Assembly: GCA_946965045.2 (NCBI GenBank)
Contig: OX337236.1
Span: forward strand, 2,480,001-2,544,000
DNA: 64,000 nucleotides
Origin: Epithemia pelagica
Lineage: Eukaryota; Protista; Bacillariophyta
Direction: 5' to 3'
Part shown: positions 41,140 to 57,668 of the stretch, in pieces
Numbering within the stretch: position 1 is the first letter of the stretch
Layout of the letters: each line of letters starts with the position of its first letter
Program-made: the position numbers and the translations under genes
Notes under the pieces: model-generated
Database searches by the model: none
Seen by the model: only the letters and a program-made list of their open reading frames with translations
What the model was told of the DNA's origin: nothing

Positions 41140-41643
41140 CTACTCCTTGTTTGTCCAGGTTTTCAATGCATGATCAATTGACTGAATTAATGCAACTGAG
41201 CTGACCACGCGCATTTTGATGGTGATGGTCATGGGCTCCATTGAAATCAAGGTGTTCAGAGAATGGCTGGTTTTGATGACAATTTTGCCTTTCACCGTCG
41301 ATCCACTGGGTGAAGACACAAGGGTTGATTTTAGCGTGTTTGTAACAGAGGCTATGGGAATGACAAGATCCGGGAGATGATCGTCCTCCTTTCCGCGAGC
41401 GTATCCCCGGATGGAGATTGCGTTTTTGTTCTTGTCGCATGAGAAGGACCGCTGGACAAGAACAACACCACGATCAACAATCAAACGGCCATCATATCCA
41501 TCATCACTGTGCCCAGGCTTCAAGTAGATATTCACACCTGAGTCTCCAAAGATGGAAACAGCAAAACCCTGACATTGGAGTGTTTGCCCATCATCACGTC
41601 GCGTTGTGAAGTGTTTGGGTAGGTGATGAATATCCTCCTGCAT
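41140..41643 (-). CDS. Small beta-rich hypothetical protein, passenger of the piggyBac element; homolog of 46487-47059
   Basis: 167-aa ORF collinear with the 46487-47059 product (IVDRGVVLVQR / IVDRGHLLVQR; MEPMTITIKM / MEPQVVTIYM). A GTAAGT...CAG intron (41721-41650) lies just upstream. Confidence 0.75.
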   Translation of the reverse strand: MQEDIHHLPKHFTTRRDDGQTLQCQGFAVSIFGDSGVNIYLKPGHSDDGYDGRLIVDRGVVLVQRSFSCDKNKNAISIRGYARGKEDDHLPDLVIPIASVTNTLKSTLVSSPSGSTVKGKIVIKTSHSLNTLISMEPMTITIKMRVVSSVALIQSIDHALKTWTNKE

Positions 41644-41960
41644 TTTGAACTGAAGCAAATTTGTGAGTTGCAGTCATCAGCATATTCCAAGGGTTCCAGA
41701 GAATCAATAGAAGTGACTTACCAGAGAAAGCAGAATTGTTCGAGTTGAGATGTGATCGTTCAAGGTTTTGTGTCGGATTGTTGTATCACCTTGTGTCTTG
41801 TGTGTGATTTGCTATGGTGCGCCATAATCTGCATCCAACAAGAGCGCGGTGCGCGTTCATGTGTCACACTTCTTTTGCACTCGTGACTGTTTTCCCTCGT
41901 CCTCTCGATCACAAAACAAGAAATCAGAGAACAAAGGAGACCATCACCAATTACCTCACC

Positions 41961-43552: not shown

Positions 43553-45406
43553 TCAGTCTTGTTCCGTTTTACTTTTTTCCTCGATTTCGAGTGTGAGGAC
43601 GAACTGTCGCATCGAAGATCGAACTCGTTCCTTTTCCTGTGCACTGATTTGAGGGACAGGCTTCACGGTGCCACTCCCCTGCACTCTCCGCCGTTTTCGG
43701 TTGATCGAGGCAGCGTCGTCACCAGACCAGCTGAAACTTTGAACGTAGAACCAGTCTCTATCAAATCGATCAGGTGGGACGCAAAAAACATGCGCGAAGT
43801 CATCACCCGGAGAAAGACCGTACACCCCACGCTGACGGATATACTCTCGTCCGGAGACGGAATGATTCGCCTGCAGTGTTGCGTTGAAACCAAGATCACT
43901 CCCAGCCATCCCATCAAAATTGCTGTAACCATCAGGAGGCAGCAAAAGAATCTTGTTTGAAGTCAGCACATTGTTGTTAAATGACATACCCTTCCCGCAT
44001 TCAGCAACTTTGGCCTCAAAAGCTTCGTTGCTTGGGGCTTCCTCGATTTTGTCGCTTCTCCCACGAAAGACGCACGTTACAGGTGGTGAAACAGCTTGTT
44101 GCGAAGATCCTTGTGCCTCTTTTGCGCGCGGGCGACTTACTAGCTGTTTGCAGCGAATTTTAATACCGAGTCTCTTCATTCCTTCGGTGCCTTGCGCCAA
44201 GTACACTAGAACAACTCGTTCAAAAGCTAGACCGATATCCGACGCATCATTTGAACCTCTCCAGCGAACATCTTTGTGTATTTTATTCAGGAGAATTTTC
44301 CCAATAGCTCTGACTGCTCCTGGCGAGACAAAGTCTAGCGTCGCGTACCGTCGGGTTGGATTGTAACCATTCTCGTCCTCTCCCGCGCGTATTGTGAAGA
44401 ACCGGGTCACGACTTTCTCGGTGCTGGCATCGTTAAAATCCTTTCCCTCCGCCAAGGCACGCAGCAATACCTGGCTATATTTGTCAGCATTTTCAGCTGT
44501 GATCTCGTCCATGCGATCGTTGACTTTGCCCGCGGAGAGGTAGCGAGGTAGCCCGCCGACAACATAATAGTTATCCATCATTGCCGTCATTGTGGCCACA
44601 TACAGATCATTGTCTTGTTCGTAAACACGGCCCGGGTTTCTGTATAGCATATACGGGAATGCTACTTGTAGTTGCTTCAAAGACCAGGGTCCAAGGACCA
44701 GCTGACAGTACACGGATGACGTCTTGTGGGTACCACCAAGGTGGCGATCATCGGGAGAAACAGGAATGAAACAATGACCTTTCGACGCAGAAACCAATAC
44801 CAATGGCGACGGCTGTGTGTCCTTAGAAAACTGCGCTGGATCGACGACGATATCAATGATTCCACATTCCACCCAATCATCGGGGACCTCGTTGAGTTTT
44901 AATTTGAAGACGGCCCACTGCTCGTTTGAAGACGAAGGCGGCATAATGAGCAAGGTCTTGCGTTTATTTGGGGATTGGCCGAATTCAAAAATAATTGGCC
45001 TTCGCTGCTCCGATTGATGCATGAGCTTTCGAATGTAAAGCAACAATGACCAGCTCTTTCCGATTCCAGGAGACCCTCGGACGGAAACGGTCACGCCACG
45101 CTTCGACAGGTTCTCCCGAGATACCTTGAAGGCGTAGTCAACCACGTCTCGCTGCTCTTTACGAGTAACAAGGTGAGGGGAGGCATTGCTATCGTCTAGA
45201 AAATTGCTTTTCAGAGGAATAACCTCAATCCCCTCAGACAATGCTTGTGGCTCTGCGGTAGCGAGCCCTTTGAATTTAGCCGTCAAGGCCGCATCTGCTG
45301 TCCACACCGTCTCGTCCACAATAGGTACTTCCTCCTCCGCTGCCTCTTCAAATTCTGCCAGATCAAGAAAGGGGAGACCTACGTGTAGATTCGGGTCCGC
45401 TGCCAT
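43553..45406 (-). CDS. Crinkler/RHS-like P-loop NTPase with C-terminal restriction-endonuclease-like region
   Basis: Walker A VRGSPGIGKS; LGPWSLKQL; YYVVGGLPRYL; C-terminal GLAFE...PDGYSNFDGM...FNATL pattern. Intronless, 617 aa. Confidence 0.7.
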   Translation of the reverse strand: MAADPNLHVGLPFLDLAEFEEAAEEEVPIVDETVWTADAALTAKFKGLATAEPQALSEGIEVIPLKSNFLDDSNASPHLVTRKEQRDVVDYAFKVSRENLSKRGVTVSVRGSPGIGKSWSLLLYIRKLMHQSEQRRPIIFEFGQSPNKRKTLLIMPPSSSNEQWAVFKLKLNEVPDDWVECGIIDIVVDPAQFSKDTQPSPLVLVSASKGHCFIPVSPDDRHLGGTHKTSSVYCQLVLGPWSLKQLQVAFPYMLYRNPGRVYEQDNDLYVATMTAMMDNYYVVGGLPRYLSAGKVNDRMDEITAENADKYSQVLLRALAEGKDFNDASTEKVVTRFFTIRAGEDENGYNPTRRYATLDFVSPGAVRAIGKILLNKIHKDVRWRGSNDASDIGLAFERVVLVYLAQGTEGMKRLGIKIRCKQLVSRPRAKEAQGSSQQAVSPPVTCVFRGRSDKIEEAPSNEAFEAKVAECGKGMSFNNNVLTSNKILLLPPDGYSNFDGMAGSDLGFNATLQANHSVSGREYIRQRGVYGLSPGDDFAHVFCVPPDRFDRDWFYVQSFSWSGDDAASINRKRRRVQGSGTVKPVPQISAQEKERVRSSMRQFVLTLEIEEKSKTEQD

Positions 45407-46486
45407 AGTTGTCTTTGATTGTTAAGATTCGGTACAACACAACGTTCGACGACCCTTGTCTCACCCTGCATTAGGCTATCTCCACCCGAGCGCCGCTATG
45501 CTGACGTATCGGGGCTTTATGATTGGCCTCACTATCCGGATAGCGGCTTAGCGCTTAGCGGTGCAAAAGGAAAATGAACTCCAACCAGGGACACCTATGA
45601 AATTTGTAGCCAAGGAACAATTTTGTTGTTGACCCTAATAGGCAACAATGCCTTTCGACGATAGGTTCAAGCGGTTAAGTTGACGACTAGAGGCATCGTC
45701 CTTACGATAGGTAACCTAGCAAAATGGTTTTATTAAATAAAAACTACTATGGACAAAATAATAGAAGCTACGACATAATTTTCGTGTCGCAAGTTCTTTT
45801 TTTATGTCCGAAGAATGTATCGATACACTGATCCCTCCGACTAGGTGTCCGCTTCTTACAAGCTGAGTTCAGACAGAATGTTCCTGACGTAGCGCTCCAG
45901 TAGGAAATCTACGTAATCCGCGCGAGCCATCCCCTTAATATAGCCCTTCTATTTATGCCTCTACCGTTCTACCAAAAATTGACCATGGTGAACGGTCCTT
46001 TTGACCGATCTCTTGCCAAATAGGAGACGGCTCCATGATCCCATGCTCTGAACCTCTTCTCCATTCATGGGTTGAGCATGGAGAACGATGTCGGCGCTGC
46101 ATTCGTTTTGTAGGTGTCGTTTTATCTAGTTGAAGGTGGTCGCCGCGCGATTTACTACGGCGACTCACGGCAAAACTTGGTGCAACCAATGCACCTCTAT
46201 TGTAGAATCGAATGATAGAAGATAGAAGAAAGACTATGAACACTTGTAGCGTTGTTCACGTCAAAAATTGATATTCTTCTCGTTAGATATATGGAACTTA
46301 GACTAGAAGTTGCGTCGTTCACAACAAAGATTGATGTTCTTTTCTTTGTTGTGACTCACACAGCCGTACCTGAACGCAATGTATTGTACGGTAAACGTAA
46401 CACAACTATAGAATTAGATCGTATTCATAGAGAATGAAGATCCTACTCAAATGATAATCATAAAACGCTGCTACATTGTTCACTAT

Positions 46487-47059
46487 CTAGGCTTGTTGAT
46501 GATTAAAGAAGAGATTTTGAAGCGGGTGCTTGAGCATCATCGCACCAAGCGAAATGTTGAAGCGATCCATATCCTTGCTGCCCATGTAGATTGTAACGAC
46601 CTGGGGTTCCATGCAGGCTTTAGGGTTGATGGAGCAGCGTGTGTAGAGGCGGATGCGTCCCATGGGAGGTCCGTTCTTGCTCGTCTTTCCAGAGACCTGG
46701 TCCAGGTGCGACAGAGCAATGAACCCAACTGGAACAACCAACGCTGGTTCCTCATGCTCGCTTGTTGCATCCCGGTCAAAGACTGCAATCCGTAGGTAGT
46801 CGGTCGCAAGCTCCCGCTGCACAAGCAGATGGCCACGGTCGACGATGTTGTGGCCAGTGTCCTTGTTTCTCGACATGGGCCCGATGAGCGCGCAAACATC
46901 GCTGGCATAAAAGCACGACTTGAACGGGAGACCAGCACCACCCTCACGGCCATCCTCTTCGTTGAACTCGAACTTCGTCCTCATGTTGGTCATCTTGTTT
47001 CTTCTTCCTTGCCTCTTCCTGTCGTCTCTGTTTGATTGTTCCATTGCACGGCGGGTCAT
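46487..47059 (-). CDS. Small beta-rich hypothetical protein; homolog of 41140-41643
   Basis: Collinear motif conservation with the piggyBac passenger. Start could be any of four ATGs. Confidence 0.75.
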   Translation of the reverse strand: MTRRAMEQSNRDDRKRQGRRNKMTNMRTKFEFNEEDGREGGAGLPFKSCFYASDVCALIGPMSRNKDTGHNIVDRGHLLVQRELATDYLRIAVFDRDATSEHEEPALVVPVGFIALSHLDQVSGKTSKNGPPMGRIRLYTRCSINPKACMEPQVVTIYMGSKDMDRFNISLGAMMLKHPLQNLFFNHQQA

Positions 47060-47230
47060 TCGGAAGTTGCTTCATGCTGCAAGTTGATTTTGTGGCGCGC
47101 GCCGATATTGTTCACGAATGAGCGCGGGGGGATTCCCTAGATGACACAAGAACGGAGAGCGGGCAACAATCAAACAAACAAACACAACAATCAAACGAAC
47201 GAATCCCTATTGTGTTCTCACTTTCCAACG

Positions 47231-48128
47231 ATGCGCCAGACGCGTAGTGCTACCAAACGAGCTGAGTCTGCGAAGAAGGAGCAGGAGGACTCCGCCGCAG
47301 CTCCCTCCACAACCGCATTTCCCTCCGACAAGGGAAACAAGGCAAACAAGAAAATGAAGACAAAGACGGCCGTGGACAACAAAACGTCGAAGAAGAAGAA
47401 GACGACGACGACGAAGTCTCCCGCTTCGACAAAGAAGCATGTGACCTTCAACCTTGAGGGTCCTTCGTCGTGGCACGAGCGCGCAAAACAGTGGCAACTC
47501 ACCATTGGGGATGAAGATGGTATCCCAGTGTTCTTCGTCAGCAACAAGGACGTCGAATGCGCTAACCTGTTGGATATCGCGGCAGAGCTCCTTGCGATCG
47601 AGGCTGTCGGCAAAGAAGGTAAGTTTGATTGTTCATTGTTGGTTTTGAGTCTCCCTTTCTCACGACGCGCCCTCTGCTGCCACAGACACCAAACCCAACA
47701 GCAAGCCCGACAACAAGCCCGACAGCAAGCCCGAGAAGGAGATCAAGAAGGAGGACGACGTCGAGAACAAGACTCCAGAGTCTTATGTGACCCCGAAGAA
47801 AGTAACTTCTTCCCCGAAGGTGGCGTCTCGAGCTTTCGCACTGACCCCCTCACAGAAGCATGCTTTCCAGCGTCGGATTGCTGAGGAACAGGTGAAGGAA
47901 AGTGGAGCGACAGACCCTCGCCAGACTTTGAATGAGTCGCTGGCATTGGGAGAAAACATCCCGTCGTCTCCTCCTTTGTTCTTTAGCAATCCTTCCCGTG
48001 CATACCGGACATCCATTGATTCGTATGCCGATGATGGATTTCTCGAGACCCAAGAAGACTTCATCGGTACGCAGCAAAACGGGCTTTTTGGTCCCGATTA
48101 CTTGGATCATGAGGACGAGGCGTACTAG
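47231..48128 (+). CDS. Basic, Lys/Thr-rich hypothetical protein (276 aa, two exons), divergent from 46487-47059
   Basis: Intron 47619-47685 (GTAAGT...CACAG) joins ORFs 47141 and 47787 in frame. KHVTF motif. Confidence 0.7.
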
Positions 48129-48654
48129 ATATCTACTGATGGACGTTTTAGGTATCCTTAATCACTAAATATGAATCGATTTGTCATCATGGTACTTGTA
48201 GTGCTTCTACAGTCGTTCTTGTTGTGATTATCATTATTGTCGTCGTCCAAGTCCTCGTCATTGTCGTGGCTATCATTGTCGTCGTTGTATTGTAGTCGTC
48301 CTTGTTGTAGCTATCATCGCTCATCCCGTTTGTCCTCTTCATCATCGTTATGGTCGTGATTGTCATGGTCATCATCATCGTCGTCGTCGTCATCCAGCTT
48401 CCCAGTGTCGGTAGTTGGGTCCCGGTTTGCGGGCGCGTCTCGTATGGATGTACGAGGGAGTTCGTGATTGGTCCCAGACGAGCTATGATTCTTATCTCAT
48501 ATTTTGCGTTTTCGACACTTCATGGAAACAAACACGACAATGTACTAAAGTATAATATGAAGGAATAAACTAATAAATCTTAATGTCATACTGCAACTCA
48601 ACGTACCATGGTATTCTTTTTCAACAATAACACACTTTCACCACGAGGAAAGAT

Positions 48655-51513
48655 CTAAGTTTGATCGGCTTCTTTGCTCGCGATCTTCTTACCAGGTTTA
48701 TAATTCGCGGCCACAAGCACCTTACGAGGATTGTCACTTAGGACGCAAACACGCTTGTCCCCGACCCAAAGCTTAACCCCAACGAGCCCACTTCGGCGAA
48801 CACCAGGGATGTCTTTGTCATGGAAGTAGTAGTCGGAAAGCCTGCTTTCTCCAGAAGGAAGGTTGTAGGTGTTCTTTGGCATGGGATCGTGAACGGTCCC
48901 ATCTTTTCCTTGGTACACGTAGAAATGTGCACGTGGATTCCCCATCTCCCCAGTCTTAAAGCCACCAGCATGGACAGTATCTCCTCGAACGAGGAGAAAC
49001 GTGCCATATGGGATATGTACCACTTTACCCAGCTCGTTCATATAATCCTTGTGCTTCTCACCGCGGAAACTCCACAATTCAACGGACATACCCTCCTCCG
49101 CCAGGGGCATGAAAACAATAAAAGGCATGCGTTCCCGGAGTGGCAGATCTGCATTTGCTCTCCGAGTCTTTTTGATTGGTTGCTTCCCGGAGGGCGTTTT
49201 GGGACCTTCGGACATGTTCCCTGTTACGCTCTGGAACAAGAAGTCGATGTGAGGTTCTTGAACTTTTGCCTCTGTGGTCTTCATGAACGAAAGGTGAATG
49301 TTGATTTGGTCCGCAAATGAATCATCTTTTGCGTAGTTCATCCCATAGAGAGCTGAGGCAAGCAGCTGCTTGAAATTGGCCGTGACCTTTGCAGCATGTT
49401 TGGGGTTAACGTGGCCGAAGTACCGAATGTTGGACACCATTCCCTCATGTTCCATCATTGCCATCAACAAATTTGGTGTGTAGTCTTGAACAGATTTGAA
49501 AAATTTGCCCTTTCCTTTCTGGTCCAAGCCTGTGCTGTGCCACGCATTCTCCAACATTTCGAGGAGATCTGGCGGAGTTGTCAAAAAATATCCTCGATAC
49601 ATTTTGTTTTCAATATCGTACAGCCATTTGAAATACTTCGAGCGCAATTCTCTATGTAACAACTTCATTTCCTCGAAACGCTCATTCTCCTTCGCTTTCG
49701 CATCGATCGCTTCCATCTCCTCAAAAATACTATCCGTGTCATCTTCTGCCATTACCACTGGTACGAACATTCCAGTACTAGGGCTGGGATTGGCTTGAGT
49801 GGCGGGTTGAGCTTGTGCTGCAGGTAGGACGGGACTGCTGGGAAGGAGCACGGGTTGAGCTTGTGCTGCAGGTGGGATGGGATTGCTCGGAAGGAGGTGG
49901 GGTGAGCCTTCGACCGGCTGGGTCGTGCGTTGTTGTTGCTGCTGATGATGGAGCGATGAAGGTAGAGTCCCCCCGTAACCTCCATAGTTGGGTTGATTGT
50001 AGGACGGAGGATGTCCATGGTACTGCGGCGGAGGATGACTCGTCGGAGGATGAGGATAATGCGGCGGAGGATAAGGATAATGCGGCGGAGGATGATGATT
50101 GTACTGCGGCGGAGGGTAATTGTACTGCGGCGGAGGATAATTGTACTGCGGCGGAGGATGGTGATAATATTGCGGAGGATAATGCGGCGGCAGCTGAGGG
50201 GGCGAATTGTAGTGCTCAGAAACGTCTTGCGGAGGAGGCGGAGAAGGAAGAGCAGGAGGACGAGCAACAGCAGCAACTGGGCGGAAAACAGTAGTAGAAG
50301 AGGTAGCGAAAGCCTTCTTTGTTTTTTTCCCGTCGTCTTCATTTTCATCACTGGGTCGACCGCGTTTCTTTCCCTCGTCTTCGTCGTCGTCACCTTTCGT
50401 CGACGGTCGGATAACCTGTTCGGAGGACGTCGGCGATTCGTCCGAAAGGTTATAAAACAAAGACAGCTCGTCGCCCTTTTCGATCCGCTTGATTGCCTTG
50501 ACTAGAAGATTCGGCATGATTCTCACGTTGTAATGATCATCCGATTCATCCGGTGGATTGTCTGTACCGTACCGATGGTGTAGGTGGTCGTTGATTAAGT
50601 GCAGCCCCATGCCGAAGTGATCGTCGTTGTCTGCTTGAAGCCTTCGATTGTCACGTCCGAACTGAATCGCGTACTCGTTGGGTACAACTGTCCGAGACGT
50701 GACGTCGTTTCCCGTGTACGCACCAATCACTTCACCATCTTTGATTGTCCGAGCTGCAAAAACACCAAACCCGGCGCCTGGGAGTTTTGACTCCTTCACC
50801 TCAAACAGAAGCACTTTTCCAAGGTAGATCTTGACTACCGGATTGTTCGCAAATGTGTAACCGACATGCTTGCCGATCGGGAAGGTATGTTTTCTGTTCT
50901 TCTTGACAGGGAGACCCATTCCACTCGAAAGTGGCACAATCTTCCCCTTTTGCATGCCAGAACCGGGCTTCCGAATTGGAGCTTCTTGGACCGAAAAAGT
51001 GGCCGAAATCTTCCGTGAGACATACTCTCCCATAGCACAGGCAAGTACAGCACTGTCTTTGATCTTGGAGAGCGTCTTGAGGCCTTCGGTGAATTTCCTG
51101 ATTGGATCCCGTCCAGAACGAGAAGGGAGTTTCTCCACTTCCTCGATGCCTTTCTTGTAGTCCTCTGTGCGCGTATCGATGAGGAGCTGCCGCATTTGAG
51201 TTTCCGAATACTGTTTGCTGTGGTCCTTCTCTGGATGGCCACGCCAAACATCTGCAAGCTTTTTATCCTTCACTTCGGCAAAGTCTTGATCCGAAAGAAA
51301 CCGATGGTGCTTTGTTGTTGTCGCTTCGTCTGTTGCTGCTGCTTCGGGTGCTGCGGCTGCTGCTGCTTCGGGCGCCGCTGCTGCTTTGGCTGACTGCTCT
51401 TCCGCTGCATCTATTGCAAGTATAAGAGCGTCAAGATTTCCTTTGTCACTCATGCTGTCTCGTTTTTGAGCGCCTGCTTTTGAATACTGTTTCTTAGGGC
51501 TTGGTTTCCCCAT
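48655..51513 (-). CDS. SET domain + Pro/Tyr/His linker + 2OG-Fe(II) dioxygenase-like fusion protein
   Basis: SET (~50450-50810): EVKESKLPGAGFGVFAARTIKDGEVIGAYTG...LHLINDH...AIKRIEKGDELSLFY. Dioxygenase (~48900-49330): QEPHID, DTVHAGG, NPRAHFYVY. Intact intronless ORF. Confidence 0.8.
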   Translation of the reverse strand: MGKPSPKKQYSKAGAQKRDSMSDKGNLDALILAIDAAEEQSAKAAAAPEAAAAAAPEAAATDEATTTKHHRFLSDQDFAEVKDKKLADVWRGHPEKDHSKQYSETQMRQLLIDTRTEDYKKGIEEVEKLPSRSGRDPIRKFTEGLKTLSKIKDSAVLACAMGEYVSRKISATFSVQEAPIRKPGSGMQKGKIVPLSSGMGLPVKKNRKHTFPIGKHVGYTFANNPVVKIYLGKVLLFEVKESKLPGAGFGVFAARTIKDGEVIGAYTGNDVTSRTVVPNEYAIQFGRDNRRLQADNDDHFGMGLHLINDHLHHRYGTDNPPDESDDHYNVRIMPNLLVKAIKRIEKGDELSLFYNLSDESPTSSEQVIRPSTKGDDDEDEGKKRGRPSDENEDDGKKTKKAFATSSTTVFRPVAAVARPPALPSPPPPQDVSEHYNSPPQLPPHYPPQYYHHPPPQYNYPPPQYNYPPPQYNHHPPPHYPYPPPHYPHPPTSHPPPQYHGHPPSYNQPNYGGYGGTLPSSLHHQQQQQRTTQPVEGSPHLLPSNPIPPAAQAQPVLLPSSPVLPAAQAQPATQANPSPSTGMFVPVVMAEDDTDSIFEEMEAIDAKAKENERFEEMKLLHRELRSKYFKWLYDIENKMYRGYFLTTPPDLLEMLENAWHSTGLDQKGKGKFFKSVQDYTPNLLMAMMEHEGMVSNIRYFGHVNPKHAAKVTANFKQLLASALYGMNYAKDDSFADQINIHLSFMKTTEAKVQEPHIDFLFQSVTGNMSEGPKTPSGKQPIKKTRRANADLPLRERMPFIVFMPLAEEGMSVELWSFRGEKHKDYMNELGKVVHIPYGTFLLVRGDTVHAGGFKTGEMGNPRAHFYVYQGKDGTVHDPMPKNTYNLPSGESRLSDYYFHDKDIPGVRRSGLVGVKLWVGDKRVCVLSDNPRKVLVAANYKPGKKIASKEADQT

Positions 51514-51924
51514 GGTCGAAACGCAAAAACTCGAAACACGAAACACAAGAAACACGAAACGCAGCATTCTCCTCAGCCCTCAGCTCACATTCCAAAAAAA
51601 AATCTTGAGCTCACATACTAAAAAACGGTGAAGTTTTGGTATGTGGGCTGAGTTACTTAAGGATTTGCGTGCCAGTTTTGCGATGCGTGCGCGTTTTCGG
51701 AGAGGGAGGCGTGTTTCGCGCGAGGTCTGCTCCGAAAATCGTCCATTTTCTCGCTCTCTCACATTTTCGAGGTACTTACAAACTGATAATCCAACACGCA
51801 ACACGAGCACGCAACACGGAAGTGATCATTGATACCAATAACTGACAAGAAATACATTCAATAAAATGGATTGCTGTTATAAATAGTTAAGTTACATGCA
51901 TTTTGATGATAAATGGAGATTAGA

Positions 51925-54900
51925 TCAGGTTTCTACTGCACCAGATCCTTGCGTTTCTCTCCAGAGACGTGAGATGAAGCCATGATCTTGGTCGAAGGCG
52001 GATCGGTGACACTTGATTGCTTTTGACATCTTTTCAATTTTGGCATACGAGAGGCCCGCAGCTGCATAGTCTCTGTTGTTGGAATTTTGATCGTATAACA
52101 AGTACGCGAGCATATAGCGACGTGCCTTTGCTGACATTTTCCGCATGATTTCGGGTGTTGTTTTCTTCAGGCTCGCTGTCAAACATCGTAAAAAGGCAGC
52201 TTTGTCTTTCTTCTCATTCAGTGAGAAAGCACGAAAGACTTTTTTTGAGTAACCCCAGCCATACTCGATCCCCTCACCGGCCATTTCACAGTGATACTTG
52301 GTCGATACGAGAATCTCGATCCTGCAACGATGTCGTTCAGACAAGTCTTCCGCCAGCTTCTCCATTGCAGATTTTTCGTTCTTGAAATCGGAGCATTCGC
52401 TCATCAGATGAACCATAGAGTACTTTTTGTAGTCCGCCTGATAGGCTTCTTTCACAGTCTTCTTATCCGCTTCCAACCATGCATCTCTGGTTGTCTTGAC
52501 GTACTTGATCATGTTGTTAGGGTCTATCCACCCCCGCTCCCATAACACTTGAAAGAGCCCTTTTGCAGCATTCATCCAGCCTTCCTCGATCACGTCATCT
52601 TCAATCACCGTTGCAATGTTGGAGCGTTTACAAAGGTCCTGTAGTTCACCAGCATTTTTCGATTGAAATGAACGTTGCATTCCAGGTCCCATGACCCGGA
52701 CAAGTTTTGCCATGAGCTCCTTCTTTGTGAGGTTGCGCTTTTTCTTTCTACCAGTTCGGTGTGTATTCTTCGATGCGACACGCTGCGCGTCATTGAGACG
52801 ATGGCCTTTTTTAGCAACTGGACCACGATCGTTCTCCTGATAGACGAGGTGTTGTACGTCACCAACTCGTAGTTTGTCGTCATGGTTGTACGGGCCAAGG
52901 CAAGCTTGATCAATAATTTGTGTGTCCCGCATGCTGGGAACAGCTCCTCCCCAGTCGTTATTCATGTTCAGAGCATTTAACCCATCGGATTGTTGTTTTC
53001 CATGACCACTGCTTTGGTCGAACAAAAAGACAAAGTCATGGGCGGGGAACATGACCACGAGGCAATCGACAATATCCTCCAACTGCAAGGCCATGTATTC
53101 ATAATTCCAATATCCCTCTTTATCTGCTCCGTATTCAAAAAAGCGAGTGAACGGTTGGGCATTGGTAATTGGAGTCTTGGCAGTGTGACCATTGAGGTTC
53201 ACTGCAGCCTCGGTAGAGACGTATTTGTTGTGTGTCGCATGTAGACGGAGTTCATTAATCCGAAATAGACTCGCAGCAAGCAACGGGTTTCCGTTCATAA
53301 GGAAGCCCCATGATCGGCTTACAAAAGCGCTGATCATCATCCCATGTCCATCATCCTTTGGCAGCATTTTAGTTGCGCCATCTTTAGTGTACCATGCCTT
53401 AGACGAGAAGGAAAACTGCTTGTAGATCGATTCGTCCTGGCCGATGAGGATGACAGGTTTGCGGTCGGAGGGAAACCTGTGTGACAAGTTTCCATTGTGA
53501 ATTGTGTTTTCTGGTTTGATGTACCGTTCAAATTCGCTTGGGAAGGCATCAACATGGTACTCCCGCATCTGCTTGCCTGTTGTTACATCAGTGTACTCAA
53601 ATACAAAGCTGTTTGGCAAGAGCTTCTCCTTGCCCGCATTCCCTTCGTTTTCAAGTTTGATTGCATCCTCGGTAGGGAGCTGCACCCACCGATACGACAG
53701 CTCTTCCCACTTAAAGTACTTCTTGACAAAAGCAGCTCTGTGGGCAACATTCTCAGCATTTTCGTGTCGATCAGTGAAGTATGTTTTCGTGTGTTCCTTG
53801 AACACGAGCCCTGCAGCAGCAATACATCGCCACGCTGTGCTTTGCGAAATGGTGGAAAGCTTCATCGATGCCAAGAAGGCCTCGTACGATACTGGCGTTG
53901 CATTCGTATCCATGCACTCTTGTACGATCATGGTATGCATATCCGGAAGCAATGTTGTCCTCAGGTACATTAGAGCAGACTCTGTTGTAAGAGTGCTCAG
54001 GTTTTCCTTTGCCCAGCATTCAAACTTTACCTTTGCTTCAGGTATGTGAACGAATAAGACGGGCGATGGCTCTTTCCCAATATGAACGTGGTAGTTGGGA
54101 TGAGGGAAACTGTCGTTTTCCCGAAAGTACCTGTGAAAACGAGCAATGGTCTTGGGATGTTTTTTTACTTTTTCACCATAAATCTGTTCCATTTTGCTAA
54201 TGGCTTCGCTTATGCAGTTCAGCCATGTACGACCGTGTGGCATATCAAGCAACGCTATCTTATAAGAAAGTTGTAAATACGTTGCCTTGAGCAGTACCCT
54301 CTGTTGCTGTTCCTGGTTGAGGGGGAAGATGTCTCCCTTGTTAACCACATTCGGAAGTGCCTCCACGTTGGAAATGGCCCTTTCAAGGGTTTCTATCCAT
54401 CGCTCAAGATTTCGTTTTGACGATCCTGGAGAATCGCATTTGCCGGCAAAGAGCCTACGGTTCCTTGGCTCATCAAAATAGGCGCTTTCCATTTGTTGCG
54501 ATAGACCTTGGATCATCTCACTCTCGAAAAGTGAAAAACCAATCGGCAAACTCTGTGGATGGTCATGGCCGATTTCGTCTGTGGCCAATTCAGGATGTTG
54601 GATTGCTCCAACAAGCACCTGATTTGTGTTGTCGTGAGGTGGTGACGTTTGCATTTCGGTAGGGCTGTCTCCAATTTGTGGCGGTTGACCATGTTGCTGC
54701 GTTGCAGTGCTCTTGATTGCTGGTGGAGTTGAAGTGTTTCTTGCTTGCTTGGATGTATTTAGCGTGCCTTCACGCAACCCTGGTGACTCTTCGTTCCTTC
54801 GCTTCGTTGGCTTCGCTCGTCCCGACCGCCGAATCACATTCTCGGCTGCAGCCTCCAGCCATTCTTGATGATCGTCCAACATCACTGGCCCTGTTGTTGT

Positions 54901-55269
54901 GTCGGAGCTTACATAAAAGAATGTGTATCTTTTCTTTTGGATTGTGACTTTGTGGCGGTACCAGCCAAACTTGTTTGATTCCGACACCTTAGTTTCGAAA
55001 CAGAGTTTAAGAACAACATCTTTAGTCAAAACAAGATTCAGTCTGAATGGCGACAGTCCTGGCAGCCAAGTGTGCATGAAGTTCACAATCTGGGTGTCTT
55101 GGATCCACTTGTTGCAGAACCCAAACGAGGATGGGGAGCATTGCGTCTTAAAGACGTCAAGAATCTCTTGTGCCGATAAACTTCGTTCCATCCGAGACTG
55201 TGTTGCGTGGGATGAGTCGGATGATCGCGTCATTGAGTATGATGCCAACCCCGTACCTTGTTGCCCCAT
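51925..55269 (-). CDS. Large DDE transposase, IS630/Tc1-mariner-like
   Basis: Motifs IGQDESIY, FLFDQSSGH, KGLFQVLWERG, SDFKNEKS and STKYHCEMAGEGIEYGWGYSK. Intact 1114-aa ORF. Confidence 0.85.
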   Translation of the reverse strand: MGQQGTGLASYSMTRSSDSSHATQSRMERSLSAQEILDVFKTQCSPSSFGFCNKWIQDTQIVNFMHTWLPGLSPFRLNLVLTKDVVLKLCFETKVSESNKFGWYRHKVTIQKKRYTFFYVSSDTTTGPVMLDDHQEWLEAAAENVIRRSGRAKPTKRRNEESPGLREGTLNTSKQARNTSTPPAIKSTATQQHGQPPQIGDSPTEMQTSPPHDNTNQVLVGAIQHPELATDEIGHDHPQSLPIGFSLFESEMIQGLSQQMESAYFDEPRNRRLFAGKCDSPGSSKRNLERWIETLERAISNVEALPNVVNKGDIFPLNQEQQQRVLLKATYLQLSYKIALLDMPHGRTWLNCISEAISKMEQIYGEKVKKHPKTIARFHRYFRENDSFPHPNYHVHIGKEPSPVLFVHIPEAKVKFECWAKENLSTLTTESALMYLRTTLLPDMHTMIVQECMDTNATPVSYEAFLASMKLSTISQSTAWRCIAAAGLVFKEHTKTYFTDRHENAENVAHRAAFVKKYFKWEELSYRWVQLPTEDAIKLENEGNAGKEKLLPNSFVFEYTDVTTGKQMREYHVDAFPSEFERYIKPENTIHNGNLSHRFPSDRKPVILIGQDESIYKQFSFSSKAWYTKDGATKMLPKDDGHGMMISAFVSRSWGFLMNGNPLLAASLFRINELRLHATHNKYVSTEAAVNLNGHTAKTPITNAQPFTRFFEYGADKEGYWNYEYMALQLEDIVDCLVVMFPAHDFVFLFDQSSGHGKQQSDGLNALNMNNDWGGAVPSMRDTQIIDQACLGPYNHDDKLRVGDVQHLVYQENDRGPVAKKGHRLNDAQRVASKNTHRTGRKKKRNLTKKELMAKLVRVMGPGMQRSFQSKNAGELQDLCKRSNIATVIEDDVIEEGWMNAAKGLFQVLWERGWIDPNNMIKYVKTTRDAWLEADKKTVKEAYQADYKKYSMVHLMSECSDFKNEKSAMEKLAEDLSERHRCRIEILVSTKYHCEMAGEGIEYGWGYSKKVFRAFSLNEKKDKAAFLRCLTASLKKTTPEIMRKMSAKARRYMLAYLLYDQNSNNRDYAAAGLSYAKIEKMSKAIKCHRSAFDQDHGFISRLWRETQGSGAVET

Positions 55270-55578
55270 TGAGGGTGGTTCAAGTAAACCCTAAAGCGTC
55301 CGGATGCAGCTCGGCAACAAGGTACGCGGTTGGGATGGCCCTCCACCATGGTCGTTAGACAACAACCGTTTTTTCATCATTTTCGACGGAATTCTAGCGT
55401 TCGGAAGCTGTCACACATCACGGTACGAATAAAAAAATTTATTATTCAGACACTGGGTTGTCACGAGTCGGACACTTTCATTCACTAGTCAGGCCAAACG
55501 CTATTGAGGATTATATTTTATGGTACTAAATCTACGAGGGGTCTACGTCAGGAACATACTCCCTGAACTCAGCTTGTA

Positions 55579-56657
55579 GCCCCCCAGCCGCTCTCCGCGA
55601 CCAACCATTTTTATTTTGGTTTTTTTGCGTTTTAGAAGAAAATTTCGGGTCAAAATGAAAAAGACCACGCCGGCCTTCTGGATCACACTTTCAAGATTCC
55701 GTGAGCAGGCGTGCGCACTTTGACCGTTGGTCTTCCCCATTCTTGATTGTCCCACATTATTTTCACCACGCACCTTTTGACATGGACAATGGACATGCAC
55801 CATCACAATGCATTCTCCATCATCTGCACACCATGGACATTTGACAGATAGACCATAGATATTGTTTTGCTCTACCTCCATCCTTTCTTTGTTTTTCTAG
55901 GAGAAGTGTGGTTGTTTCTAGTGTTAGTGTCCGTTTAAAAGTGAACCCTCCTCCACAACACCGTGCCGTTGCCGTAGGCTTGTCTCTTTGCAACCACTTG
56001 ACTTACTACAGTCCTATTTTAGAATACGTTTCTTTCGAGTTCCGTTATGGAGTATGTTGAGTGTAGAGTCCCCTGCACTGCTGGGAAAAACATGTCATGC
56101 TCATGGCAATAAAAAAAGAATAAGAGGAGCAGGTCGACATCACAATCGACTAGAGACGACAGAGGAAAAATGGATGGCTTCCTCCACTTATCCTATCTAC
56201 TCCTAATTGAGTTCTATAGCTCTATTTTGTCCTATAAGAATCCTACAAATGATGCCAGCAGCATCGACCAAAATGGATGTTATTAGGCACAAACAAATGA
56301 CACACTATGGCAACGTAGTGAGAGCCTAAAACTAAACATTGTCCATTCCAATGCAACTATAAGTCATTCCAGAACTTACCATGCTGGATGTGCAGTGACA
56401 AAGATGAGATGAGATGCCCAGGGACGAAGCATGCCGTTTTTGGTGTTGGTTTGGTCATTGCCTCGTTTTGTTGCCTGCATCGATTTTGTGGCCTGTGAAC
56501 TGTGAACCCACCGAGAACACTATTTTGAGTCTTGTTGAGCAGAACGCCTGCCATCTTCCAACTGTCACAGCACGCCAGCCTTTCCAACGATGGATGTGAA
56601 ATTTCCATTCATTTTTTTGTCTGTGAGATTGGGTTTGTCTTGCCCGAACAGACGAGC
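55579..56657. mobile_element. 1079-bp insertion into the right TIR, flanked by a duplicated TA
   Basis: Removing it plus one TA restores AGCTTGTAAGAAGCGGACA, the exact reverse complement of left-TIR 45846-45864. The insert has no TIR of its own. Confidence 0.7.
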
Positions 56658-56682
56658 TAAGAAGCGGACATCTAGTCGGAGG

Positions 56683-56825
56683 GATCGATACACGTATCGA
56701 TACATAAAGAATGTATCGATACACTAAAGAATGTATCGATACACTAAGGAATGTATCGATACATGTATCGATACATAAAGAATGTATCGATACGTGTATC
56801 GATACATTCTTTATGTACCGATACA
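56683..56825. repeat. Array of palindrome TGTATCGATACA (8 exact ATCGAT cores), ending in a perfect hairpin
   Basis: ATCGAT at 56684, 56696, 56715, 56735, 56755, 56767, 56786 and 56798. Arms 56772-56793 and 56796-56817 are exact reverse complements. Confidence 0.95.
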
Positions 56826-57141
56826 AAATCCTATATATCGCAAAGAGCATACATCCACCCGTCCGCTTCGCTTGTTAACACGAATGGCGATGAACTCTCC
56901 GGCCAAGCGATGCCCCTTCACCTTCATGGAGTGTTTGATGTGACAACGGCCCTCGTCCGGAAAGACACAACAATCAATCTGAAATTGTAAAAAGACCCTG
57001 CCCCCATCGAAACTACGAGACAACAGCATGCCGAAAACAGTTCCTGCGGAAGTGAAAGGAGCTCGAGCTTTGCACTTCCTCCAATCAATCCATCCTGCTT
57101 TTTTGGGCGCCATTGTCACTTTTTGTTTGATTGTTCACTTA

Positions 57142-57309
57142 CATGTATCGATACATGTATCGATACACAAAGAATGTATCGATACACGTATCGATACACA
57201 AAGAATGTATCGATACACTGAAGAATGTATCGATACACTGAAGAATGTATCGATACTAATATCGATACATAAAGAATGTATCGATACACTGAAGAATGTA
57301 TCGATACAT
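57142..57309. repeat. Second TGTATCGATACA array (10 ATCGAT cores, ~20-bp unit AAGAATGTATCGATACACTG)
   Basis: ATCGAT at 57147, 57159, 57178, 57190, 57209, 57229, 57249, 57261, 57280 and 57300. Confidence 0.95.
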
Positions 57310-57668
57310 TTACTATTGTGTTTTAAGTACCTGAGACATTTTCCCGGACCTTTGAATTCTTCTATTATACTGTACCCCATGAAATGTTTCTGTACTATTT
57401 TGCTAGGTAACCAAAACTACGATACCTAGTATACGAGTAGACCTTAACCTCCTATGATACCTTTGTCATCGAAAATCGAAAAGGTCCAAGACGATGTTGC
57501 CTACTAGGGTCGACAACAAAATTGTTCCTTGGCTACAAATATCATAGGTGTCCCAGAGACTTCAGACGCGCGACAGAAACATATTATGGGGTAGTTCAGT
57601 CCTGAAACGATTGTTCATCACTCTACCATCTACCCTCTAAGGTTAGCCGAGGAAAAGTTCGAAAGGGA

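Follow-up and report, generated by a model that had tools for sequence, protein, structure and literature searches.

A 64,000-nt stretch of the genome of the diatom Epithemia pelagica (GenBank assembly GCA_946965045.2, contig OX337236.1, positions 2,480,001 to 2,544,000; hereafter the window) contains a 9.7-kb DNA transposon, which its sequence characterizes as a recently active, multi-copy, cut-and-paste element with four genes. One of these genes encodes, in a single polypeptide, a SET domain and a C-terminal domain predicted to be an Fe(II)/2-oxoglutarate (2OG) oxygenase of the double-stranded beta-helix (DSBH) fold. The best explanation of the data as a whole, in which we place moderate confidence, is that this is an accessory gene maintained by the transposon, whose product modifies chromatin-associated proteins and thereby aids the element.

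The fusion gene

The gene was found in the ORF analysis of the window as one uninterrupted open reading frame (ORF) of 970 aa on the minus strand. Its second ATG, at 51513 (MGKPSPKK), lies in an ACCATGG context and is the likely translation start, giving a protein of 952 aa; the gene calls in other copies of the element start mostly at the second or the first ATG. Residues are numbered here from the first ATG. The gene comprises the following features:

48655..51567, minus strand: SET-linker-2OG oxygenase ORF, 970 aa (952 aa from 51513)
50449..50772, minus strand: SET domain, residues 266-373 (Pfam PF00856)
50314..50370, minus strand: basic stretch KKRGRPSDENEDDGKKTKK, residues 400-418, resembling a bipartite nuclear localisation signal (NLS) by sequence only
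49999..50190, minus strand: Pro/Tyr repeat linker, residues 460-523, with 9 PPxY motifs
48796..49641, minus strand: predicted Fe(II)/2OG oxygenase domain (DSBH), about residues 643-924, from model and fold search
49243..49251, minus strand: HxD of the facial triad, H773 and D775, invariant in 69 sequences
48970..48972, minus strand: distal iron-binding His, H866 (VHAGG), invariant in 69 sequences
48931..48933, minus strand: candidate Arg for the 2OG C5-carboxylate, R879 (NPRAHFY), at least 90% conserved, 13 residues after H866

An earlier note on this DNA, made by reading the letters without database searches, had described an intact ORF of about 950 aa starting at 51513, in which a SET domain and a C-terminal dioxygenase domain are joined by a proline- and tyrosine-rich repeat linker. 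This outline holds in all its parts, down to the codons proposed for the catalytic residues, which are exact for H773 (49249-49251), H866 and R879. The linker differs in length among the copies, by one 4-codon gap and one 9-base indel, and is immediately preceded by the basic patch KKRGRPSDENEDDGKKTKK, which looks like a candidate bipartite NLS. A 1114-aa transposase ORF lies upstream of the fusion ORF on the same strand, at a distance of 357 bp. The 90% protein cluster of the fusion contains 14 distinct sequences with at least 14 placements of at least 948 aa, plus a few broken copies, and all placements are on contigs of one assembly (ENA ERZ21939226).

The SET domain

The N-terminal part of the protein contains a genuine SET domain, for which lysine methylation is predicted only. 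As the earlier note had proposed, residues 266-373 match the Pfam family SET (PF00856), with an E-value of 2e-6 and 28.6-30.7 bits against a gathering cut-off of 22.4. The GxG motif is present as GAGFGVFA (264-271), the segment GDELSLFY carries Y372, and the conserved Tyr residues are kept. Matches of the family profile to SET chains were weak, the best having an E-value of 4e-4, and included EZH2, PRDM2, MECOM, KMT2C and SETD7, with PRDM16 also among the nearest; GDELSLFY aligns on GEELFFNY of Chaetomium EZH2, and Y372 is also retained in two sister families of the transposon (L016 and L017, described below). The LINDH reading of the N-H motif was likewise correct, since the position reads L-I-N326-D327-H328, with the N kept and the H replaced by D. 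There is no cysteine-rich post-SET region, and an acidic tail follows the domain.

It may therefore be asked whether the oxygenase is the sole enzyme of the fusion, with the SET domain serving, without methyltransferase activity, to bind lysine-containing tails or to target the protein to them. This would agree with the invariant ND where canonical SET domains have NH, with the acidic tail in place of a post-SET motif with its cysteines, and with the presence of PR domains (PRDM2, MECOM, PRDM12, PRDM16) among the nearest solved sequences. Several PR domains have weak or no methyltransferase activity. However, the GxG motif of the S-adenosylmethionine pocket, the conserved Tyr residues and Tyr372 of the ELxxxY motif are all kept, and the strongest constraint found in the gene is that on the SET segment (a ratio of nonsynonymous to synonymous substitution rates, dN/dS, of 0.11), though constraint is no proof of catalysis. 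We consider such a division of labour unlikely, and prefer the reading in which both domains are enzymes.

The oxygenase domain

Residues 620-970 have no match in Pfam. An exhaustive HMMER scan of sequences clustered at 50% yielded at least 241 relatives with E<=1e-3, from marine protists. In an alignment of 69 of these sequences three residues of QEPHID (Q, H and D), the VHAGG His and two glycines are invariant, and the Arg of NPRAHFY is conserved in at least 90% (in the numbering of the isolated domain, H154 = H773, D156 = D775, H247 = H866 and R260 = R879); because of this conservation the motif pattern can hardly be due to chance. The HxD pair is kept in all transposon copies and in one host-type homologue. 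The AlphaFold model of the C-terminal domain (pLDDT 84.9, pTM 0.83) retrieved Fe(II)/2OG oxygenases throughout the matches listed by Foldseek. Since the model, the fold search and the conserved HxD...H...R residues agree, we assign the domain to the DSBH Fe(II)/2OG oxygenases, as the earlier note had done, with an intact active-site signature and 2OG turnover as the predicted activity. When the 69 family members were scanned against Pfam, only two had any match at E<=0.01 (a Med26/TFIIS domain and a marginal CUB-type domain), and the family is unannotated.

The nearest folds are those of PhyH-like enzymes and prolyl hydroxylases. The family profile also gave a weak match (E 0.04) to the sequence of the PhyH-like enzyme FtmOx1, precisely over the segment in which 'VvHAGG ... 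npR' aligns with 'VVHAGG ... KPR'. R879 is thereby aligned with an Arg of FtmOx1 at the identical spacing of 13 residues, and H866 with the His of VVHAGG, which we take to be the distal iron-binding His of that enzyme. A basic insertion (residues 787-799) is modelled with low pLDDT.

A closer kinship with JmjC or TET/JBP enzymes was not borne out. JmjC had no Pfam match in the query or in the 69 family members, and no JmjC chain was among the 50 best matches of any of three structure searches; Tet_JBP likewise had no Pfam match in these sequences and was absent among the top structural neighbours, and neither did the AlkB-type family 2OG-FeII_Oxy_2 match any of them. The JmjC and TET readings are therefore the least supported. 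The lack of Tet_JBP and 2OG-FeII_Oxy_2 matches speaks against an oxygenase that acts on nucleic acids in the manner of AlkB or TET and frees the element of DNA methylation. Such enzymes score below PhyH-like enzymes and prolyl hydroxylases, the only sequence match to a solved protein, itself weak, is that to FtmOx1, and no nucleic-acid-binding domain was found in the fusion. We regard a nucleic-acid substrate as improbable.

The transposon and its transposase

The element was delimited by comparing the window with nine other loci whose products fall into the same protein cluster (L001-L009, in the assembly ERZ21939226). Its features are:

45857..55578, minus strand (that of the gene): complete DNA transposon including the flanking TA, 9,722 bp, 10 copies compared
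55532..55578: terminal inverted repeat (TIR) on the transposase side, ending ...CTGAACTCAGCTTG and followed by TA (55577-55578); 47 nt, 83% complementary
45857..45903: TIR of the far end, TA (45857-45858) followed by CAAGCTGAGTTCAG...; ends identical in 10 copies
51925..55269, minus strand: transposase, 1114 aa, divergent Tc1-like DDE by fold match; candidate motifs GQDES (610-614), FDQSSGH (750-756) and KYHCEMAGEGIEYGW (991-1005)
47141..47884, plus strand: ORF247, opposite-strand accessory ORF of unassigned function, called with 247-250 aa in all copies
46487..47059, minus strand: ORF190, conserved accessory ORF of unassigned function

All nine loci match the window solely over 45857-55578, from end to end, with 98.2-99.4% BLAST identity. 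The flanks of the ten copies are unrelated (host genes or repeats), while the ends TA|CAAGCTGAGTTCAG...CTGAACTCAGCTTG|TA are identical. TA is present on both sides in 10 of 10 copies; because no duplication extends past it, we read the TA as the target-site duplication of the element. The claim that the fusion gene lies inside TIRs and is co-oriented with the adjoining transposase is thus corroborated, with ends set by the other copies. A further inverted repeat, farther out (45588-45654 and 57488-57554), was considered as the element's ends and rejected, as the homology shared by the nine other copies stops short of it; it marks another TIR element, the target of the 9.7-kb insertion.

Eight of the ten copies are mutually 99.94-99.99% identical and form a first subfamily. 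The second subfamily consists of the window copy and L009, which have 99.76% identity and differ from the first by about 1.5%. The differences between subfamilies concentrate in one third of the element, on the transposase side, which suggests mosaic copies. In the window segment 51925-55578 compared with L001, there are 2.6-3.9 substitutions per 100 bp on the transposase side, against 0-0.4 per 100 bp at the far end of the element. In L001, some 185 codons at the start of the 1114-aa ORF are heavily altered and out of frame, so that the real start of the transposase may lie downstream, or that segment may be mosaic.

The transposase had no match in Pfam (including DDE_3), in a phmmer search of the PDB or in a profile search of the PDB. 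However, a model of its core (pLDDT 86) matched clusters of the AlphaFold DB named 'Tc1-like transposase DDE domain' with E-values of 1e-23 to 1e-13 and probability 1.00, and atlas features of the protein point to DDE_3. In the PDB, Foldseek matches of the model to Mos1 and Sleeping Beauty were insignificant. Eighteen homologues were found, all without annotation. The family-invariant motifs are GQDES, FDxSSGH and KYHCExAGEGIEYxWG; among 19 homologues D612, E613, D751 and H756 are invariant and E995 is conserved in at least 90%. If E995 is the third acidic residue, its spacing from the second is ~244 residues, far beyond that of DD34E. On the strength of the AlphaFold DB fold match, the TA duplication and the atlas features, we place the element in a probable, very divergent Tc1/mariner-like lineage with a giant transposase, and we leave strict Tc1 membership open because of the acidic spacing.

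The two small accessory ORFs have no match in Pfam. ORF247 has a 36% identical homologue in the sister family L017, and ORF190 has homologues in L017 (60%) and L016 (43%). A C2-like identity of ORF190 was a weak atlas lead with low recognition and was not adopted.

Sister families, selection and probable exchange of the cargo

Two sister families, L016 and L017, were found in the same assembly and examined together with the loci L010 and L011. Their TIRs are related (CAAGCTGG..., CTAGCTGG...). L017 is about 9.8 kb long, has a transposase 56% identical to that of the window and TIRs beginning TA|CTAGCTGGTTTCAG, and carries the SET domain (84%), the linker and the oxygenase (73%) in the same order, as well as homologues of ORF247 and ORF190; this copy is broken by frameshifts. 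L016 is about 7 kb long, with a transposase 38% identical and TIRs beginning TA|CAAGCTGGTTCACG, and carries a SET-only gene of 408 aa (30%) and an ORF190 homologue, with no oxygenase. In both families the SET or SET-2OG gene lies directly downstream of the transposase. L010 (7825-10776) is a broken copy in which a 96% identical SET region is joined with a 74% identical oxygenase.

A degraded SET (49%) and oxygenase (42%) separated by a ~370-nt spacer, with one stop codon, are found in L011 (9227-10639). No transposase or TIR could be recognised within 10 kb of them, and L011 could derive either from a further carrier family, as an old copy, or from a fusion outside transposons, as a decayed one.

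Selection was estimated as dN/dS by the method of Nei and Gojobori:

SET, window vs L011: dN/dS 0.11, p 3e-10
Oxygenase, window vs L011: dN/dS 0.32, p 2e-10
Oxygenase, window vs L010: dN/dS 0.40, p 4e-5
Oxygenase, L017 vs L010: dN/dS 0.43, p 1e-4
SET and oxygenase, window vs L017: dN/dS 0.67 each, p 0.03-0.05 (marginal)
Transposase, window vs L017 (benchmark): dN/dS 0.33, p 1e-42
ORF190 vs L017 and L016 (benchmark): dN/dS 0.28 and 0.26, p 3e-11 and 6e-9

In the deeper comparisons the ratios are 0.11-0.43, all with p<=1e-4, and the catalytic residues of both domains are conserved in every copy; for these two reasons the constraint on the cargo is judged comparable to that on the transposase, and purifying selection has acted on both domains. 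Neutral evolution, which the earlier note had named as an outcome that would undo its proposal, is not what these comparisons indicate. They bear on the idea that the gene is a neutral passenger, assembled from pieces of host genes without benefit and intact in appearance because the copies are young. Such an origin would be in keeping with the near identity of copies within the subfamily, at which intact ORFs are uninformative, with a pN/pS of 0.64 on 38 changes between the window and subfamily A, and with the marginal ratio against L017. It does not explain the transposase-like constraint in the deeper comparisons, the retention of the catalytic residues in all copies, or why the SET gene immediately follows the transposase in three families with transposase identities of only 38-56%, and we judge it decidedly improbable.

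The cargo does not share the divergence of the rest of the element. Between the window and L017 (13743-16736) the synonymous divergence dS is 0.12-0.23 for the cargo, compared with 0.91-0.95 for the transposase and ORF190. This difference, together with the 96%/74% chimera in L010, indicates that the cargo gene recombines, or undergoes gene conversion, between families.

The oxygenase family outside transposons

Members of the oxygenase family also occur as standalone proteins. One of them, P0019, is syntenic in several metagenome contigs, where it adjoins genes for a selenophosphate-synthetase-like protein, TPR and WD40 proteins and PGK; another, P0024, from the diatom Epithemia clementina, adjoins PP2C and DnaJ genes. 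Further standalone homologues come from MMETSP transcriptomes, and some are thus expressed. None of the 69 aligned family members contains a SET domain. Word-index searches with the full-length protein and with the SET region returned only its own 90% cluster, from which uniqueness of the fusion does not follow; the full-length search scored the 8000 candidates sharing most words, and the proline-rich linker may fill them. On the simplest interpretation, the oxygenase is of host type and was captured by the transposon lineage.

A model for the function of the fusion

We propose that a recently active, TA-targeting, Tc1/mariner-like cut-and-paste transposon maintains an accessory gene, in which an oxygenase acquired from the host-type standalone family was most likely fused behind a SET gene already present in the transposon lineage. 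The product would consist of two enzyme modules, a divergent SET methyltransferase-like domain and an Fe(II)/2OG oxygenase, with a disordered linker between them. Directed by its NLS-like patch, it would enter the nucleus and modify chromatin-associated proteins by methylation and oxidation, the possible targets being histones or silencing factors and perhaps the transposition machinery. As a result, copies of the element would stay expressed or transposable. Action on chromatin-associated proteins is inferred from the SET domain and from the published reading of analogous cargo (see below), and a benefit to the element from the retention of the cargo across families. In the earlier note the protein had been cast as a chromatin writer and eraser. 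What stands of this is the presence of constrained SET and 2OG modules as transposon cargo; the eraser half is weakened by nearest folds that are not of the JmjC or TET type, and the writer half by the ND in place of NH.

Several observations weigh against the proposed role in modifying chromatin-associated proteins. The N-D pair is invariant in four diverged SET copies, and methyltransferase activity is uncertain. The enzymes nearest to the oxygenase in fold are small-molecule oxygenases and prolyl hydroxylases, and not histone or DNA demethylases. As to maintenance by selection, most intact copies are too young for their intactness to be informative, and the ratios of both domains against L017 are marginal. 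Besides, the three runs that hold sequence of the element behave as genomic DNA (contigs of hundreds of kb, even intergenic cover), with no RNA run among those listed.

That the oxygenase is instead a prolyl or lysyl hydroxylase of the element's own PPxY linker or transposase, and regulates transposition and not chromatin, we hold to be very improbable, as this idea has structure alone as its basis, with a shallow Z gradient, and the standalone family members lack such linkers, while L016 carries a SET gene without any oxygenase.

The proposal that the fusion modifies chromatin-associated proteins can be extended to a self-contained mobile counter-silencing cassette, which would write one protein mark and oxidise another on the chromatin of the element's own copies and be traded between families. 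Trading by recombination fits the synonymous divergence of the cargo, which is far below that of the transposase; taken as a whole, the cassette is a tentative idea and rather doubtful. If it were true, this would be the first 'writer plus oxygenase' in a single polypeptide in a transposon, with a so far uncharacterised oxygenase family at its core and possibly with a new protein or nucleic-acid substrate.

Neighbouring DNA in the window

The outer inverted repeats mentioned above delimit a second TIR element (45588-45856 and 55579-57554), split by the 9.7-kb insertion. Its TIRs are 67 nt long, 91% complementary, and start with GGGACACCTATGA; it is apparently non-autonomous. Arrays of the palindrome TGTATCGATACA occur in it at 56684-56825 and 57143-57319, and a single unit at 45816-45830. 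No other copy was present within the DNA fetched, which therefore offers no empty site for the TA duplication.

A distant homologue of ORF190 (34% over 98 aa, E 2e-7) is encoded at 41140-41658 on the minus strand, in a neighbouring element, which suggests an accessory gene common to different transposon types. The ORFs of this neighbour had no match in Pfam, and the label 'piggyBac-like' given to it earlier was not confirmed. An intact ORF of 617 aa (43553-45406, minus strand) lies outside both the Tc1-like and the outer TIR element; it had no match in Pfam and no homologue in the fetched loci.

Comparison with known systems

Few transposons carry chromatin or DNA modifiers of their own, and those that do give a direct view of how mobile DNA counters host silencing. 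The element described here is young, intact and multi-copy, and the same genome provides natural comparison sets in the form of a SET-only sister, a fusion sister and broken or mosaic copies. It also gives a functional context to an unannotated Fe(II)/2OG oxygenase family, of which marine protists have at least 241 members when clustered at 50%. Should the domains act on chromatin, transposon silencing in diatoms could be studied in a tractable system, and a compact chromatin tool with two activities might be gained; with an inert cargo, the element would remain a well-documented representative of a strongly diverged Tc1-like lineage whose transposase is a giant.

Both kinds of modules have precedents as transposon cargo. 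TET/JBP genes are carried by fungal DNA transposons of the Kyakuja, Zisupton, Plavaka, EnSpm, IS3EU, Harbinger and Helitron groups (PMC12730594). A preprint on the genome of Bostrychia moritziana describes red-algal Plavaka, Zisupton and Mutator elements with the mobile accessory genes PAG2, which combines an N6-adenine methylase with SET, and PAG3, which combines a ParB-like domain with a 2OG oxygenase, and Helitrons that also captured SET and 2OG genes (bioRxiv 10.1101/2025.02.11.637652). Transposon-borne SET and 2OG oxygenase genes have been read as anti-silencing cargo (PMC12730594; 10.1101/2025.02.11.637652). Finally, a SET histone methyltransferase is cited as being encoded by HarbingerS and MuDR transposons of Phytophthora (Kojima and Jurka 2014, Repbase Reports, cited in PMC12730594).

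The red-algal genes resemble the diatom fusion in being accessory genes that pass from one transposon lineage to another and are proposed to act on the chromatin or DNA of their own element as modifiers. However, as far as their published description goes, PAG2 and PAG3 are separate proteins carried by CACTA-type (Plavaka) and other non-Tc1 elements, whereas the diatom fusion is one polypeptide, has no methylase or ParB domain and travels on a TA-targeting Tc1-like carrier. The Phytophthora elements are likewise stramenopile DNA transposons with a SET accessory gene, but they belong to the PIF/Harbinger and Mutator superfamilies, and the description cited mentions no fusion with an oxygenase. 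The fungal TET/JBP cargo shares with the diatom domain the Fe(II)/2OG dioxygenase type with its HxD/E...H triad, the exchange among DNA transposon lineages and the interpretation as an escape from silencing; the diatom oxygenase is not of the TET/JBP type and differs in its lack of a Pfam match, in its nearest folds, which are those of PhyH-like enzymes and prolyl hydroxylases, and in its fusion to SET.

Among enzymes of known structure, the PhyH-like oxygenases FtmOx1, AsqJ, OkaE, AndA and KanJ and the prolyl 4-hydroxylases PHD2 and P4H are 8-14% identical to the diatom domain, which has no match to Pfam PhyH or 2OG-FeII_Oxy. They occur as standalone enzymes, with small molecules or HIF, EF-Tu or collagen as substrates, whereas the diatom domain is fused to SET and carries the basic insertion 787-799.

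SETMAR is a primate host gene in which a SET domain is fused to a captured mariner transposase. It shares with the diatom system the link between SET and a Tc1/mariner-type element; in the diatom, however, the SET gene is separate from the transposase and resides on what appears to be an active transposon.

The earlier note had taken the fusion for undescribed cargo. In full-text literature searches, neither a SET-oxygenase fusion nor this diatom element was found described. Transposon-borne chromatin and DNA modifiers, including the pairing of SET with an oxygenase, are nevertheless already known, the two having been published as separate genes; what looks new is the joining of both in one polypeptide, the family to which the oxygenase belongs, and a Tc1-like element as carrier.

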